Positions 11,804 to 20,435 of a DNA stretch of 41,747 nucleotides are shown here, one piece after another. Under the pieces are notes generated by a model, which worked only from the letters and a program-made list of their open reading frames with translations, had not been told where the DNA came from and made no database searches. The DNA comes from Schmidtea nova (Eukaryota), in assembly GCA_044892505.1 (NCBI GenBank), contig CM097883.1, positions 73,904,159 to 73,945,905 of the forward strand, in the 5' to 3' direction. Numbering within the stretch: the stretch's first letter is position 1; each line of letters begins with the position of its first letter. The position numbers were made by a program, and so were the translations under genes.

Positions 11804-12318
11804 TCAGAAAAATTTAATCAAAATATTTCTCTTTTTAATTTACTTAAAAATATTAGTAAAAATGTTTTGGAAATAAAACAGTAATTTTATTATTTCAATC
11901 TTTATTTATAGTACTTTGATAGTTATAAATTTTCTAGTTATTAACAATAAAATCATTTATCTTTTTCGTCATCTTTGATCTGTTTTCAGTTTAATTTTTA
12001 TTTATTTATATTTAGGTTTTGACTATATCAATATTTTATAAATTAATATGTATAACCCGAAAAAAGGTTAACCCAGAGTTTAATTACCATATTCTAATTT
12101 TTAATTAAAAATAAAAATTAACTAAAACTATATTAAAATTGAAAACATTATTTATTTTTAACTAATAATTCGCAAAAAATAGTTTAGAATTAAAAATAAA
12201 AGAAATAAAGTTGGCCTCCATGAAAATTTAAAAAATAATTAAATGAACTTGTAACTTAATTGAACGCAATAATAATTAAAACCTAAACTAAAGAATATGG
12301 TAATTGAGAATTTATATA

Positions 12319-13408
12319 CACCAGTTTTCGTTGATTAAAAGTAACTATGATACAAGTAGGTGTGTAAATCTACTTGTTACTCATAGTTACTTTGTTTTAA
12401 TTTTTTGTGATACATTTTTATGTAGCTATTTATTTTTCATTTAGCCATTTTTTAAAAATGGCTATCAGGTAATTTTATTTATTTAGATATCTTTTAAGGT
12501 TTCTGTTTTGATTTTACAATGATATAAGATCACTACAGAAGCTTTGAAAGTTTATCTATATTCATCAATATTATTTTATTTTATATTTATTAGCTTTTAG
12601 AAAAATATGATTTTTTATGAATTTTTTTGGAAGTATTTTACATTAAACGTAAGTAAAAATATTTTTTAACAATAGTTTATTAATGAAATTCCATTATATT
12701 TGTTCTTGGCTTATTTTTATTTATTATTAAATAATTTCTAGGAAATCATGATTTTTTAACATTTTTTTGGGAATTATTTTCATTTAACGTAAGTTAAAAA
12801 ATCATTTTTAATTAATAATTATTATAATTATTTCTAATTTTGAAATATTTTTTGGATATTCCAAGAAATAATTTAATTAAGCTTAATTTTTTATTTCAAG
12901 AACAGCCAAATTTTATCGTCCTGTATTATATGAGACTTCAAAATGATCCAAATTGCAGAGTAAATATGCTTAATTGTCTATAATTTGAAAATAATTAGAC
13001 GAAATTATTTTTTGGCTACTGAAAAAAGGGAAAATTTTGTCATATAAATTTTGTAAATATATGAAATTTTATATTAAAATAAAACTTACGATGTTATTTA
13101 TCCATTTTCTAGACAACTCCCTTAGAAAATATTCCAAAAATCTACCTAAAAATCATATTTTAAAAATAAATTAATTAATTATAAGACTTTTAAACGCGTA
13201 AAAAAATGTACCCTTAAAAGTTTGCATGCAATTTTCATTGTGTGTTGTGTTTGTGTGCATAATTTATTTTTTCTCATAGATTGTCTACCACATACTAAAA
13301 CTTTTAAACGACGTAAAATCAACTGTTAACATCAACGTAAGTTATCATTTTCTATTGGTTATTTATTTTTTATATTATAGATTTACTTTTATCGAACGAA
13401 AACTGGTG
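12319..13408 (-). mobile_element. Non-autonomous, diverged relative of the DD28E Tc1/IS630-like element (1090 bp)
   Basis: TA|CACCAGTTTTCGTT...AACGAAAACTGGTG|TA (14-bp perfect TIR). Interior aligns by eye to both subterminal regions of 14947-18989 (AGCCATTTT..AAAATGGCT..CAGGTAATTTT..GATCACTA.AGAAGCTTT; TTGTGTTTGTGTG..TTGTCTAC.ACATA) and keeps a decayed transposase N-terminal remnant (RLIIFKL vs RKIIYKF). Confidence 0.8.
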
Positions 13409-14289
13409 TATATATATATATATATATATATTTATAGCAAAATTTTCTTTTTCATTCACATCAATTAAACAATATTTCTATCAAAGTTTTTCAGCTTTGT
13501 TTCACTGTCATTTGAAACAATCAAATCTGAATATACAGCTCTCTGTATATTTTCAATTTTACACATTGAAAAATAAGTTTTGATTTAATTTAATTTTTCA
13601 TTAACATTACATAACAATTAATTAATAATTTCATACTTTTACAAACGAAAATTAAATTCTAAATAATAAAACTAATAATTTTTTAATTATCTTTTGGTTT
13701 CTTCTTTGATCTCTTTTCTTATTCAATAATTTTCATATTAACTTTTTTTAAAACTATTGACCAAAGTTTTTTTTGGTTGTAAGTAATAAGATGTGAGCAC
13801 ACTGGCTTCATCGAGGAAGCAATGAGTCATGACTATGACTCATTAATTGGATAAGGCATGAGCGAGTCTTTTTGTTATGACTCATGGCCTTTATTCTACA
13901 GCGTGTTAAACACGTCGTGTCAAGGTCATTAGATTTTTAAAATAATTTTATGTTTTTTTAAAGAGGTTATAAGCTCACTAGCTGAACTGGTAATAGCTTC
14001 TCAAAAGCTACAATGAAGGCTACAAGTTGTCATGTTATTGTTTCTATATACCCAAAAAGTGCATCGGATAAGGACGCAAACTGCCAAAGTCGAGAAATCT
14101 TTTCATTTTACAAAGATATTTTGGATCATCCCGATTATTTGACCCATTTCGATATCAACCCGATTTTTTGACCCAAAAATTTTTTTATAAATAAATTATA
14201 ACATATTATTGTTTTAAATAAATTAATAATAAATAAATAATAATAATAATTGTAATAATAGTAATAATAAAAATAATAATAAAAATTAT

Positions 14290-14500: not shown

Positions 14501-15280
14501 TAATAATAATAATATCATTTTTATTTAATTTTTATCCTACCCAATAGGTCAAAAAACAGCTTGGTCCAATATTTTGGAGACTCCTCTCTCACAGCAACAA
14601 AAGACATTTTGTAAGATTCAGCATTAGAAAAAATATTCTCAGAAAATATTTTTTGATACGATCCTTCCTTCAACTCGAAATGGGAAGCGAAGATTTTTCC
14701 TTTATATTATAAAAACTTGGAAACCTGTTGTTTTAATCTATCTGTTGTATCTCATCAAATGATTGACATATTGTCCAAGCAAAATGTTTGTTCAGTTCAG
14801 AAAAGATTTAAAAAAAATATTTTGTGAATTTCATCAAAATCTTTGTTCCATGCTGTGCTTATCCAATCAGATTTGTATTTGTATGCCGAACAAGTACTGC
14901 AATGTCTTTGTTAAACAAGTACGTAATGTGTCTCATAAAACTGGTACACCGTGTTTCATTGGATATGGCGACCTATAATACAGGTGAGTGATATACATCA
15001 CGAGTTATTATTAGTCATTAATTCAAAATTTGTTGGAATTAGCCATTTTAAAATGGCTTTCAGGTAATTTTTGTAATTAGGATAACTTTTAAGTCTTTTA
15101 TTTTGATCGCATAATGTTATGAGATCACTATAGAAGCTTTAAAAGGTTATCTTTATTCATCAATTTTATTTTTATTTAATTTTTAAATAATTAGTAGAAA
15201 ATGTTTATGATATTATGGAATTATTAACATCAAAGGTAAGTAAAAATTCAATTCGAACTAATATTTATTTGATAAACACA

Positions 15281-16702
15281 TTAATCTCCAAATATTTCAA
15301 TTTTCCGAAAACATTTAGAAAAAAATCGGCGAACATGTAAGAAAAAGTTTTCCAAATCTTTATAATCATCTTTGTTTAATTCGTCTTCAAGAGCTGTTTT
15401 CACCAAACAAAATCTGTCTTGGAAAGACATTGTGGAGAAGCCATTTGATCTTGATATTGTCTTCCTTAAACTGCATTTTATTTTGCTAAATAAACTTTCG
15501 ATTGGGTTGAGGAAAGGGCTGTATGGTGGTAAATTTACAACGAAATTGTTTTCTGATATTACTCCACCATGTATTGAGGCATTATCATGAATTAAGTGGT
15601 ATCCTGTACCATCTAATTTTGACGTTAATTCTTGAATGAAAAGTTGGTAACTTTCTTTTTTGAAAGATCCAACTATAAATTTGTGATGTACTGGTCCTTT
15701 TAAGCCAATTGCAAGAACCAGTGACATATTTGAGCCTCGGTTAGTGGGTACAATTTGATAAAGTCTTTCACCTTTCTTCTTCCTTCCCAGATTTTGGCCT
15801 GACCATGAATTAAATCCACATTCGTCAATGTAAATTAATTTTTTGTCTTCCCAAGCTTCGTCTAAAAAGCGAGTTACATACTGTAACCTTAACTCGAGTA
15901 CGCGGTCTGAATTTCGAGCAGCTACACATGGCCTTATTTTTTTTAATGTAATTAGGTTCCTGTTCAAAAACCTAAAAATTGTCGCTCTTGATACTTGGCA
16001 ATTAAATTCATTGAGGAATTTTCTCATTTCCTCTAAGGTTGCACCAACGTTGTTTTCTACAAAATCTAACAACTTAATCCCTGTTTCTTCTGAAATTCGA
16101 GGCTTGCTACCACCTCTTGTGCTTTCTGGTAGGTGGCCATATTTTTCAAATTTATAAATTATTTTTCTTATAGAATTTTTTGTTAGGCCAAGTAAGCTTC
16201 CCAAATGGAAGTAATCTTGTTTATTTTCCTTTGCGTTTATGATTCTTGCTTTGTCGATATCTGAAATCCTATAAAAATCAAATAACTTTTTAAATATTTA
16301 TTATTTCATCTTACGATTTGCGAACATTTTTTCGGATATCAAATGAAATGTGGTTGGACGATGTCCCTGGAATATCTGAAAGGCTAAGCCCATAATAAAT
16401 ATTTTAATAAATAAAAAAGGTGATACCATTTTCCTAATTCATCTTCACGAAATGCCATTGTTTCCACTGAATTTTCTGAAAAACTGGGAAAATATAAAAA
16501 TTTTATGACTTAATTTACATTACTTACGATGATATTTCATCTTTTTCACGAAATGGTATTGTTTCCAGTGAATTGTCTGAAAAACTGGGAAAATATAAAT
16601 TTTTCAATACTTAAATTATAATACTTACGATGATATTTCATCATTTTCGCGGAAAGTCAGTGTAGATCCATCAGATCCAATTATCGAAATTTTATTTTCC
16701 AT
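15281..16702 (-). CDS. DD28E Tc1/IS630-like transposase, 5 predicted exons, 414 aa (exons 16702-16629, 16584-16528, 16483-16427, 16383-16315, 16268-15281)
   Basis: Catalytic motifs LIYIDECGFN, LIHDNASIH, LPPYSPFLNPIE; HTH-like N-terminal region (RGGSKPRI, GATLEEMR). Four GT-AG introns of 44, 44, 43 and 46 nt, all phase 2, give a continuous frame from the ATG at 16702. The transposase call is secure; the exon model is inferred. Confidence 0.85.
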
Positions 16703-16921
16703 ATTTATTTTCAATTTTTCTGCTGATAAAAATTATATATGGTAGCCATATTGAATAAAACAAAACACACCCATAAAAGTTACCATCTGTTTTTTTCTAT
16801 GTTTTGTGTTTGTGTGTAATTATTTTTTTTCTTACCTTTTGTCTACGACATAATAAATCGCCATTTTCAGTAAAACAGCAATGAATTAGGTACAGGTAGG
16901 TGTGTATTTTTCTATAATATA

Positions 16922-18942
16922 CACCGTGTTTCATTGGATATGGCGACCTATAATACAGGTGGATGATATACATCACGAGTTATTATTAGTCATTAATTCA
17001 AAATTTGTTGGAATTAGCCATTTTAAAATGGCTTTCAGGTAATTTTTGTAATTAGGATAACTTTTAAGTCTTTTATTTTGATCGCATAATGTTATGAGAT
17101 CACTATAGAAGCTTTAAAAGGTTATCTTTATTCATCAATTCTATTTTTATTTAATTTTTAAATAATTTGTAGAAAATGTTTATGATATTATGGAATTATT
17201 AACATCAAAGGTAAGTAAAAATTCAATTCGAACTAATATTTATTTGATAAACACATTAATCTCCAAATATTTCAATTTTCCGAAAACATTTAGAAAAAAA
17301 TCGGCGAACATGTAAGAAAAAGTTTTCCAAATCTTTATAATCATCTTTGTTTAATTCGTCTTCAAGAGCTGTTTTCACCAAACAAAATCTGTCTTGGAAA
17401 GACATTGTGGAGAAGCCATTTGATCTTGATATTGTCTTCCTTAAACTGCATTTTATTTTGCTAAATAAACTTTCGATTGGGTTGAGGAAAGGGCTGTATG
17501 GTGGTAAATTTACAACGAAATTGTTTTCTGATATTACTCCACCATGTATTGAGGCATTATCATGAATTAAGTGGTATCCTGTACCATCTAATTTTGAAGT
17601 TAATTCTTGAATGAAAAGTTGGTAACTTTCTTTTTTGAAAGATCCAACTATAAATTTGTGATGTACTGGTCCTTTTAAGCCAATTGCAAGAACCAGTGAC
17701 ATATTTGAGCCTCGGTTAGTGGGTACAATTTGATAAAGTCTTTCACCTTTCTTCTTCCTTCCCAGATTTTGGCCTGACCATGAATTAAATCCACATTCGT
17801 CAATGTAAATTAATTTTTTGTCTTCCCAAGCTTCGTCTAAAAAGCGAGTTACATACTGTAACCTTAACTCGAGTACGCGGTCTGAATTTCGAGCAGCTAC
17901 ACATGGCCTTATTTTTTTTAATGTAATTAGGTTCCTGTTCAAAAACCTAAAAATTGTCGCTCTTGATACTTGGCAATTAAATTCATTGAGGAATTTTCTC
18001 ATTTCCTCTAAGGTTGCACCAACATTGTTTTCTACAAAATCTAACAACTTAATCCCTGTTTCTTCTGAAATTCGAGGCTTGCTACCACCGATTGTGCTTT
18101 CTGGTAGGTGGCCATATTTTTCAAATTTATAAATTATTTTTCTTATAGAATTTTTTGTTAGGCCAAGTAAGCTTCCCAAATGGAAGTAATCTTGTTTATT
18201 TTCCTTTGCGTTTATGATTCTTGCTTTGTCGATATCTGAAATCCTATAAAAATCAAATAACTTTTTAAATATTTATTATTTCATCTTACGATTTGCGAAC
18301 ATTTTTTCGGATATCAAATGAAATGTGGTTGGACGATGTCCCTGGAATATCTGAAAGGCTAAGCCCATAATAAATATTTTAATAAATAAAAAAGGTGATA
18401 CCATTTTCCTAATTCATCTTCACGAAATGCCATTGTTTCCACTGAATTTTCTGAAAAACTGGGAAAATATAAAAATTTTATGACTTAATTTACATTACTT
18501 ACGATGATATTTCATCTTTTTCACGAAATGGTATTGTTTCCTGTGAATTGTCTGAAAAACTGGGAAAATATAAATTTTTCAATACTTAAATTATAACACT
18601 TACGATGATATTTCATCATTTTCGCGGAAACTCAGTGTAGATCCATCAGATCCAATTATCGAAATTTTATTTTCCATATTTATTTTCAATTTTTCTGCTG
18701 ATAAAAATTATATATGGTAGCCATATTGAATAAAACAAGACACACCCATAAAAGTTACCATCTGTTTTTTTCTATGTTTTGTGTTTGTGTGTAATTATTT
18801 TTTTTTCTTACCTTTTGTCTACGACATAATAAATCGCCATTTTCAGTAAAACAGCAATGAATTAGGTACAGGTAGGTGTGTATTTTTCTATAATATAAGC
18901 TATTTAATTATTATAGGTCGCCATATCCAGTGAAACCTGGTG
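16922..18942 (-). mobile_element. Tc1/IS630-superfamily DNA transposon, inner nested copy (2021 bp)
   Basis: Same TIRs (16922-16954, 18910-18942); TA at 16920-16921 and 18943-18944; inserted just inside the right TIR of the outer copy. Confidence 0.92.
17256..18677 (-). CDS. DD28E Tc1/IS630-like transposase, second copy (exons 18677-18604, 18559-18503, 18458-18402, 18358-18290, 18243-17256)
   Basis: Offset 1975 bp from the first copy; all splice sites conserved; few amino-acid changes (R>I in ESTRGG, L>Q in exon 2, T>S in exon 1). Confidence 0.85.
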
Positions 18943-20435
18943 TAAGCTATTTGATTATTATAGGTCGCCATATCCAGTGAAACCTGGTGTATAAATACTT
19001 AGAAATTTTAACAAATATGTTTTGAAGTGCATCAAGAAAATTTTATAATTTCTCTATTGAATAAAGACAATGTTATATCTAGCCTAAAATTCTTTATAAC
19101 GGATGATGAAGCTGCTTTCGAAAAGAAACTAATTGATTTTTCGTGGATCTTGAACCAAAAAATTGTTTTGGGCAGAAAAAACGCTTTTATAAAAACGTAT
19201 TCGATATACAATTTGAAGATCAAATGAAATGCAGTCGAATTATCATAGGATTTCTTTATATAGAGAAAATTTTGGAGATATTGGGCATTCATTATGAAAG
19301 TCATTTTTAATGATCTTTAGAGGTAAATTAATGTATATAATTATAATAATGACTTCATATCTCAGATGAGACTAAATGAAATGACTTTATGGATACAGAA
19401 TAATAGATCTTGGCAGAAATCGGTCTGGCTCAAAAGGAAAGACGAAGATGACTGAAAGGCGGAAGAAATCGTCATTTATTTGACTGAATTAACTTTTAGA
19501 TTATCGAGTCTTTATGTAGATTTTAACATTGAGTTTTGTAAATAAATTTTATCAGCTTTTTATTCATATAATACTATTTTTGTTGACAAGTACAATAATC
19601 ATCAACACATTTTATCAAATCGCTAGTATTTATTAGATTCTATTTGCTTCAGGTAGATCATTAAGATCATCAAAATGTTCATCAAATTTTATAAACTACT
19701 ATTTTCTTCAGCTATTTCATGAGATTCATTAAATAATTCTTCTGAAAATTTTTCATCACAAAACTCATAATTTTTCGTCATATTGATTAATAAATCTTAT
19801 CGTTCCATATGCAAAATCCGATATTGTTTTAATATTTTAAATAAACCTTTAATATACACTTACATTTTAAATTTAAATAATTGACCTTTGTTTGTATTTA
19901 AAATATTTTAAGCAAATATTTTATCAAGTTTGGTAAAAATATTTTAAAATACCACAACGTAAGATATTTATTTTCTGATTGGTTGATACTGAGTCACTTA
20001 ATTATTTTGTTTTGTAACTATCCAAATTCTCATTGATTTGTAAATAAAGTATGTTTTTTCACCATACAAAATTCAATTTTTGAAAATTATTAAAATAAAT
20101 CTGTTTAAAAATGGTGTAAATGATACGGGATATCCGATGGGTTTCCGAATTTCATTAATAAGGAACAAATTAGTTGATATATAAAATTTATTGAATTCGA
20201 ATTTTGTAATTTAAGAACAATATATATGTATTAAAATTTAAATAAATCTGAATCTCTTTATTATCATATTTTTATTGTAAAAATATCAACAAATTCTCCC
20301 TCACAACCAAAAATAGTTTGATTTGTCAAAATAATAAAATGATTGATTTAAATTATAATAATTATTAGTTATAACATGAAACTATTAAAAGTAAAATGAT
20401 AGTAGATTTGATGAAGGTTTATACGTTGCTGTTTA

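Follow-up and report, generated by a model that had tools for sequence, protein, structure and literature searches.

The best explanation of the sequence described here, and in our judgement a very probable one, is that a young transposase gene of the IS630/Tc1-mariner superfamily in Schmidtea nova carries a spliced N-terminal leader that has grown by duplication of an exon-intron unit. The gene lies on the minus strand, at positions 15,281-16,702, of a stretch of 41,747 nucleotides (GenBank assembly GCA_044892505.1, contig CM097883.1, 73,904,159-73,945,905), referred to below as the window. Its main exon has no start codon before the first HTH helix, and the ATG together with an 86-residue leader would come from four upstream exons, which the host spliceosome would join across four phase-2 micro-introns of the size usual in the host. 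The ancestral state, common to the clade, would have been an intron adjacent to the HTH and a leader rich in Ser, Asp and Glu at its head and basic at its tail; in the window family this leader would have lengthened through tandem duplication of a 101-nt unit (exon tail, intron and head of the next exon), with unequal recombination still altering the number of units between copies. Because the unit consists of a whole intron and 57 coding bases, each gain or loss would keep the spliced frame.

What appears to be new is the combination of a mobile, high-copy IS630-like clade, the whole of which seems to depend on host splicing for its start codon, with a leader intron conserved in position and phase, and with repeated duplication of an exon-intron unit whose intermediates coexist in one genome. 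The multiplication of introns is an old open question for which clear recent cases are rare, and here intron gain by unit duplication is directly countable and testable, a sister family having apparently done likewise independently. The element's family may, moreover, be among the DNA transposon families that have expanded in S. nova, whose larger genome has been attributed to DNA transposons and Gypsy elements, the families being left unidentified (PMC11410931). If active, the element may interest planarian researchers as a genetic tool.

The five-exon gene and its transposon

The first-pass annotation of the window, made from the sequence alone, held that the track of open reading frames misses about 107 N-terminal residues that are spliced in through four GT-AG introns, all in phase 2. 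Mechanical rebuilding of the model (Table 1) returned the same intron coordinates and lengths and a joined frame of 414 aa with no internal stop, 107 residues longer than the listed ORF of 307 aa. The donor sequence ATC/GTAAG (the slash marking the exon border) recurs, as had been noticed, in three of the introns, the fourth donor being ATG/GTATCA, and the x-TCA-GA start ascribed to the post-intron exons proved common to them: NTTTCAGA opens each, and all four read N-TTTCAG-A. Exons have a GC content of 30-39% and introns one of 13-21%. Retention of intron 1 leads to an immediate TAA stop, and among 23 phase-2 introns 22 read NN/G TAA, an instant stop if retained.

Table 1. Features of the window discussed in the text (positions within the window)
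Feature	Position	Strand	Remarks
Main exon 5	15281..16268	-	paired-like HTH and DDE domain; 328 aa; stop codon included
Intron 4	16269..16314	-	46 nt, phase 2, GTAAGA..TATAG; position conserved in 18 related elements
Leader exon 4	16315..16383	-	69 nt; ..LSDIPGTSSNHISFDIRKNVRK..; basic tail
Intron 3	16384..16426	-	43 nt, phase 2, GTATCA..CTTAG; weakest donor of the four
Leader exon 3	16427..16483	-	57 nt; ..FSENSVETMAFREDELGK..
Intron 2	16484..16527	-	44 nt, phase 2, GTAAGT..CCCAG
Leader exon 2	16528..16584	-	57 nt; ..FSDNSLETIPFREKDEIS..
Intron 1	16585..16628	-	44 nt, phase 2, GTAAGT..CCCAG, 18% GC
Leader exon 1	16629..16702	-	74 nt; ATG at 16702-16700; peptide MENKISIIGSDGSTLTFRENDEIS..
Tandem array of 101-nt exon-intron unit	16439..16648	-	Tandem Repeats Finder: period 101, 2.1 copies, 86% matches
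Copy A, body (outer element, carries the five-exon gene)	14945..16921	-	
Copy B, complete, inside copy A	16920..18944	-	2025 bp
Copy A, 5' terminal 47 nt (inverted repeat), displaced by copy B	18945..18991	-	46/47 identical to the canonical 5' end

Exhaustive enumeration of GT[AG]..YAG paths leading from upstream ATGs into the main frame found only four, the longest of which is the five-exon model. When the upstream 533 nt were simulated 1000 times with a first-order Markov model, 106 simulations gave some path, and in no simulation did the upstream coding sequence joined in frame to exon 5 reach 257 nt. The five-exon model is beyond chance expectation. The path search demands frame consistency, so that the regularities of phase and exon length are partly built in. 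An additional 5' exon upstream of the ATG (GTAAGA..ACAG, approximately 16790-16850) was considered and rejected, both of its acceptors running into stops, and an Rfam search of 14900-19000 returned no known RNA family. The same five-exon gene recurs at +1975 (leader region 18244-18677, main exon 17256-18243). At position 16656 (minus-strand codon 16, in exon 1) the window copy encodes Thr (..STLTFRE..) where nearly all other copies and read contigs encode Ser (..STLSFRE..), a private substitution of this copy.

The element that contains the gene measures 2025 bp, including the TA on each side, and has 36-nt inverted ends, identical in all copies, whose arms are 92% complementary; TA stands on both sides of all 16 full-length copies, amid unrelated flanks. 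Its main exon matches Pfam DDE_3 (5.7e-17) and HTH_32, and the family profile matches the catalytic domains of Sleeping Beauty and Mos1 and the paired domains of Pax proteins, with the DE, DN and NPIE motifs aligned and a catalytic triad (D148, D228 and E257 of the 328-aa main exon) that is invariant in the alignment with relatives. The element had been called Tc1-type, a label that stands insofar as TA duplication, terminal inverted repeats (TIRs), and DDE and HTH domains make it a member of the IS630/Tc1-mariner (ITm) superfamily but is loose in its strict sense: the spacing from the second Asp to the Glu is 28 residues here (DD28E) and 28-31 in the clade, as against the DD34E that defines the strict Tc1 family, and the best curated family hit is the NCBIfam IS630 model (110.6 bits versus a cut-off of 100). 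Classical Tc1/mariner elements (Tc1, Tc3, Minos, Sleeping Beauty, Mos1) likewise have TA duplication, TIRs, a paired-like HTH and a DDE core, but they have a D-to-E spacing of 34, and their proteins begin some six residues ahead of the first helix and their genes contain at most one intron, whereas here the helix is preceded by an 86-aa leader with four introns.

A genome search yielded 1929 first-look candidates for the element. Full-length copies at 99.3% identity or more were found at 16 of the 30 loci fetched, and 12 of 17 copies have the 414-aa frame intact; copies differ by at most 0.7%, too little for exon and intron rates to be compared within the family. What looks like a tandem pair with a period of 1975 in the window is in fact one element nested in another copy of the same element, copy B having entered copy A at the TA that follows nt 47; the TA was duplicated, and the 414-aa frames of both copies are intact. 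This nested insertion is direct evidence of recent movement. Given the TA duplications, the near-identical full-length copies, the intact frames and the insertion of copy into copy, the element is young and very probably still active.

Shorter derivatives accompany the full-length copies. A non-autonomous subfamily of about 1.37 kb (L122-L141, for example G000:C1:170687-173719) has nt 1-784 or 1-846 joined to the 3' end, and such deletion derivatives, with about 398 pattern matches genome-wide, retain the whole leader with its four introns and the first HTH; their products, predicted at 133-138 aa if spliced, may be repressors or simply debris. A group of read variants that was taken, for the purpose of selection analysis, as a more diverged subfamily turned out to consist of these derivatives. 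Elsewhere in the window, positions 12310-13417 are taken up by a ~1.1-kb element bounded by inverted ends (ATATACACCAGTTTTCG..), whose inner parts resemble the non-coding 3' (80%) and 5' (72%) regions of the transposon. It probably derives, as a miniature form, from a sister family.

Duplication of the leader unit and the ancestral intron

The period of the tandem array in the leader is the sum of 57 and 44 nt, and the unit comprises an exon tail of 26 nt, an intron of 44 nt and the 31-nt head of the next exon, so that the last 26 nt of exon 1 are part of it. Introns 1 and 2 match at 36 of 44 positions, and exons 2 and 3, both of 57 nt, at 43 of 57, which bears out the paralogy that the first-pass annotation had proposed for each pair. 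Its further proposal, that the transposon gained its introns by serial duplication of one exon-intron unit, stands in part: at least one 101-nt unit has been duplicated in tandem, but intron 4 and at least one leader exon are ancestral (see below). The ends of the duplication seem to lie inside exons, possibly aided by the short homology x-S-D/E, often ATT TCA GAT, with which the module exons start just as the main exon does. That same-phase exons can be skipped without a frameshift follows, as had been remarked, from arithmetic, all internal leader exons being multiples of three between phase-2 introns; alternative splicing of this kind, which the first-pass annotation saw as a possible means of tuning activity, would keep the frame.

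The first-pass annotation had also suggested comparing module number across genomic copies, and the number is demonstrably polymorphic. Measured genome-wide between exact anchors, one in exon 1 and one where intron 3 begins, 297 copies have the standard anchor span of 288 nt, 29 have a span of 187 nt (one unit fewer, exon 2 being absent), and one has a span of 389 nt (one unit more, exon 2 being duplicated); this exact-anchor count found no copy genome-wide with two units fewer or more. The copies with one unit fewer show at least three different recombination breakpoints (L151, L152 and L154), and one of them, L154, is a full-length element with an intact frame of 395 aa, while L157 has five upstream exons. 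In a sister family, family B, L173 has one more 60-nt exon and intron than L164, the main exons of the two being 98% identical, and this duplication is independent of that in the window family.

The descent of the leader was followed in a comparison set of 18 elements, made up of ten S. nova loci (about five paralogous families, from a search for the clade that gave 4490 first-look candidates) and eight metagenome relatives. All 18 have a phase-2 micro-intron at the identical codon before the first DNA-binding helix, preceded in each by one to four homologous Ser/Asp/Glu-rich leader exons. Their 35 introns are 36-57 nt long, with lengths modulo 3 distributed as 13, 12 and 10, donors that are mostly GTAA[AG], and acceptors that read TAG in 26 cases and CAG in nine. 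The eight metagenome relatives are the closest found there (40-47% identity, on contigs of 30-41% GC, read at the DNA level), a metagenome scan with the family profile having given only distant relatives at 38% identity or less. At the codon of intron 4 all eight have an intron with GT..AG borders, 38-49 nt long and in phase 2, and upstream of it one or two short exons that start M-(E/Y)-N.. and include an S-D-I-S-like motif and a basic end resembling K-K-T-R-K-(S/T), to which the basic tail of exon 4 is homologous. One of the metagenome contigs (Ga0173609_10292843; L034:20-90) starts with Illumina and Nextera adapter sequence, and its first ~90 bases are an assembly artefact.

Within S. nova the leader introns of the families are all in phase 2 and 42-57 nt long, and the number of leader exons ranges from one (L168-L171) through two (L158) and three (L164, L166, L167) to four (L173 and the window family). 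The MEN start of exon 1 and its S-D-x-S motif recur in the relatives L118, L119, L168 and L169. Between sister families the lengths of leader exons differ by 0, 3 or 9 nt and those of introns by 1 or 5 nt. The leader appears to be under modest coding constraint, introns being as conserved as leader exons when families C and C' are compared. A maximum-likelihood tree built from the main-exon proteins separates the intron-bearing clade from intronless elements with support of 100/100, unites the ten S. nova loci in a single clade (99/99), and places the window family with families B and C, whose leaders consist of three or four exons (99/99). From these groupings, intron 4 and a one-module leader are ancestral to the clade, including elements from other hosts, and module number rose within the planarian lineage. 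Six mutually diverged clade members (L168-L171 plus a further two matches) are found within 240 kb at G000:C1:444.62-444.86 Mb. Their main exons are 57-92% identical, each has a leader of a single exon and an open frame, and inverted repeats are weak or lacking; they may be old copies that no longer move, or a cluster of domesticated genes.

Composition and possible role of the leader

The description of the N-terminal extension as acidic and rich in Ser, Glu and Asp is borne out by its 86 residues, which have a pI of 4.6, a net charge of -7.4, 16 Ser (19%) and 17 Asp or Glu (20%), and which are an extension relative to ordinary Tc1-type N-termini. The charge is unevenly spread, the first three leader exons together carrying about -9.5 and the last being basic. 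Motifs that recur are S-(D/E/N)-x-S, (F/Y/C)-R-E and the basic tail beside the first helix. We infer from this composition a disordered, acidic and perhaps phosphorylated tail, the basic end of which lies in or adjoins the DNA-binding domain; it might plausibly affect binding, import or stability.

It is quite possible, though we put it somewhat short of an even chance, that the spliced leader is real and that its extra modules are nonetheless neutral, being slippage-prone repeats in a disordered tail that tolerates them, with no regulatory role. Such neutrality would accord with the polymorphism of unit number, the 414-aa and 395-aa frames both being intact, with the fast evolution of the leader, the exons of which are no more conserved than the introns between families C and C', and with the single-module leaders that suffice in other families. 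Two hints point the other way, namely the persistence of the S-D-x-S and F-R-E motifs in families that are only 52-67% identical in the catalytic exon, and the independent recurrence of module gain in L173.

At the opposite pole, the leader might be a control device and not a mere tolerated extension, combining splicing-dependent output of transposase, self-inhibition set by the modules, and repressors made from derivatives, a composite that we consider unlikely. If it were true, output would hang on host splicing, with nearly all retained introns ending the frame and the AG sites 8 nt beyond the acceptors yielding only non-functional isoforms; how strongly the adjoining DNA-binding domain is self-inhibited would depend on how many acidic modules there are; and the roughly 400 deletion derivatives (leader plus first HTH, 133-138 aa) could be repressors.

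Probable splicing of the leader and comparison with known systems

The four sequencing runs that contain the sequence behave as DNA (contigs unspliced over introns 1-3, Nextera adapter and many internal-deletion joints), and for this reason the case for the introns is a comparative one. Since some regularities are partly built into the path search, independent support for the introns comes from the presence of a frame-restoring path in every relative and from the homologous peptides that result. The main exon has no in-frame ATG ahead of the first helix, and its first Met (MRKFLNEF) is at about residue 80 of 328, past the first HTH, while Sleeping Beauty and the intronless relatives P0012, P0016, P0018, P0022 and P0023 start with a Met of their own 5-9 residues before the aligned I-S-x-x-D-K. 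Host introns in the CCT and HSP60 genes, of 40, 44, 46, 47, 48, 49, 51, 55 and 80 nt, have GTAA donors and YAG acceptors; the features of U2-type introns, with GT..AG borders and host-like length and signals, are found in all four introns here and in 35 of 35 across the 18 elements. The three common indel variants that reads show within 16269-16702 all fall inside predicted introns (a 2-nt deletion at 16510, in intron 2, and 1-nt deletions at 16413 and 16419, in intron 3), and intron 3 is 42 nt long in several genomic copies. These comparisons support the upstream exons and micro-introns as real gene structure, and we infer that the introns are removed in vivo.

Splicing might, on the other hand, proceed mostly by other routes, with the 414-aa protein a minor product. 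Those routes would be the use of TTTCAG acceptors 8 nt further on, which would shift the frame and be unproductive, initiation at the exon 3 Met (MAFREDE..), or a single 54-nt intron following the ATG at 16429. All four introns of the window gene do have a second AG 8 nt downstream of the acceptor (16261-16268, 16376-16383, 16476-16483 and 16577-16584), the enumeration did return three alternative paths, and the donor of intron 3 (GTATCA) is weak. We nevertheless regard this as improbable: the +8 AG is no conserved signal, occurring in just 3 of 19 introns of the sister families, peptides homologous to those of other families result only with the acceptors of the five-exon model, and the context of the MEN start codon is common to L118, L119, L168 and L169. 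We also rejected a nematode-like reading with TTTCAG as the true acceptor, as it puts a stop in exon 2, and is further disfavoured by host introns, which use the first YAG after the T-rich tract, and by sister families that lack the motif. Most improbable of all, despite the many GT and AG dinucleotides that AT-rich sequence contains, is that the upstream "exons" are unspliced, untranslated 5' sequence and that translation begins within the main exon, at an internal or a non-AUG codon, given that none of the 1000 simulations matched the five-exon model, that the homologous leader peptides of 18 diverged elements are readable only after phase-2 splicing, that the first HTH precedes any internal Met, and that exons and introns contrast clearly in GC.

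The five-exon model, with its spliced and duplicated leader, has partial counterparts elsewhere. In the Drosophila P element, transposase production depends on host splicing, which is tissue-specific, and intron retention yields a repressor; here host splicing would likewise be needed for transposase, and intron retention would nearly always end the frame at once. Tandem exon duplication, or intron gain by tandem genomic duplication, copies an exon and an intron head to tail with the frame kept; what differs from the general case is that the duplication here affects a mobile element with hundreds of copies, among which the minus-one, standard and plus-one states coexist. Among ITm-type transposase genes, spliceosomal GT-AG introns are likewise found in the TLEWI, Tc1-like elements of bivalves with two to five such introns, the number varying between elements (bioRxiv 10.1101/656579). 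The TLEWI are DD36E elements of low copy number, mostly without TIRs or TSDs, have introns throughout the coding region and have been read as domesticated (bioRxiv 10.1101/656579), whereas the window family is DD28E, has 297 exact-anchor copies and intact TIRs, and has introns that are confined to the leader, all in phase 2, 36-57 nt long and apparently multiplied by unit duplication. HvSm (Hydra, S. mediterranea) is DD34E and is not of the clade of the window family, and a literature search found no named DD28-32E family.

One further repeat came to light in the host genome: the C-terminal third of the CCT chaperonin (PF00118, approximately 349-486) occurs in more than 70 scattered open copies genome-wide (for example G000:C1:159223005-159327316), which suggests that this fragment has been carried and amplified by some repeat.
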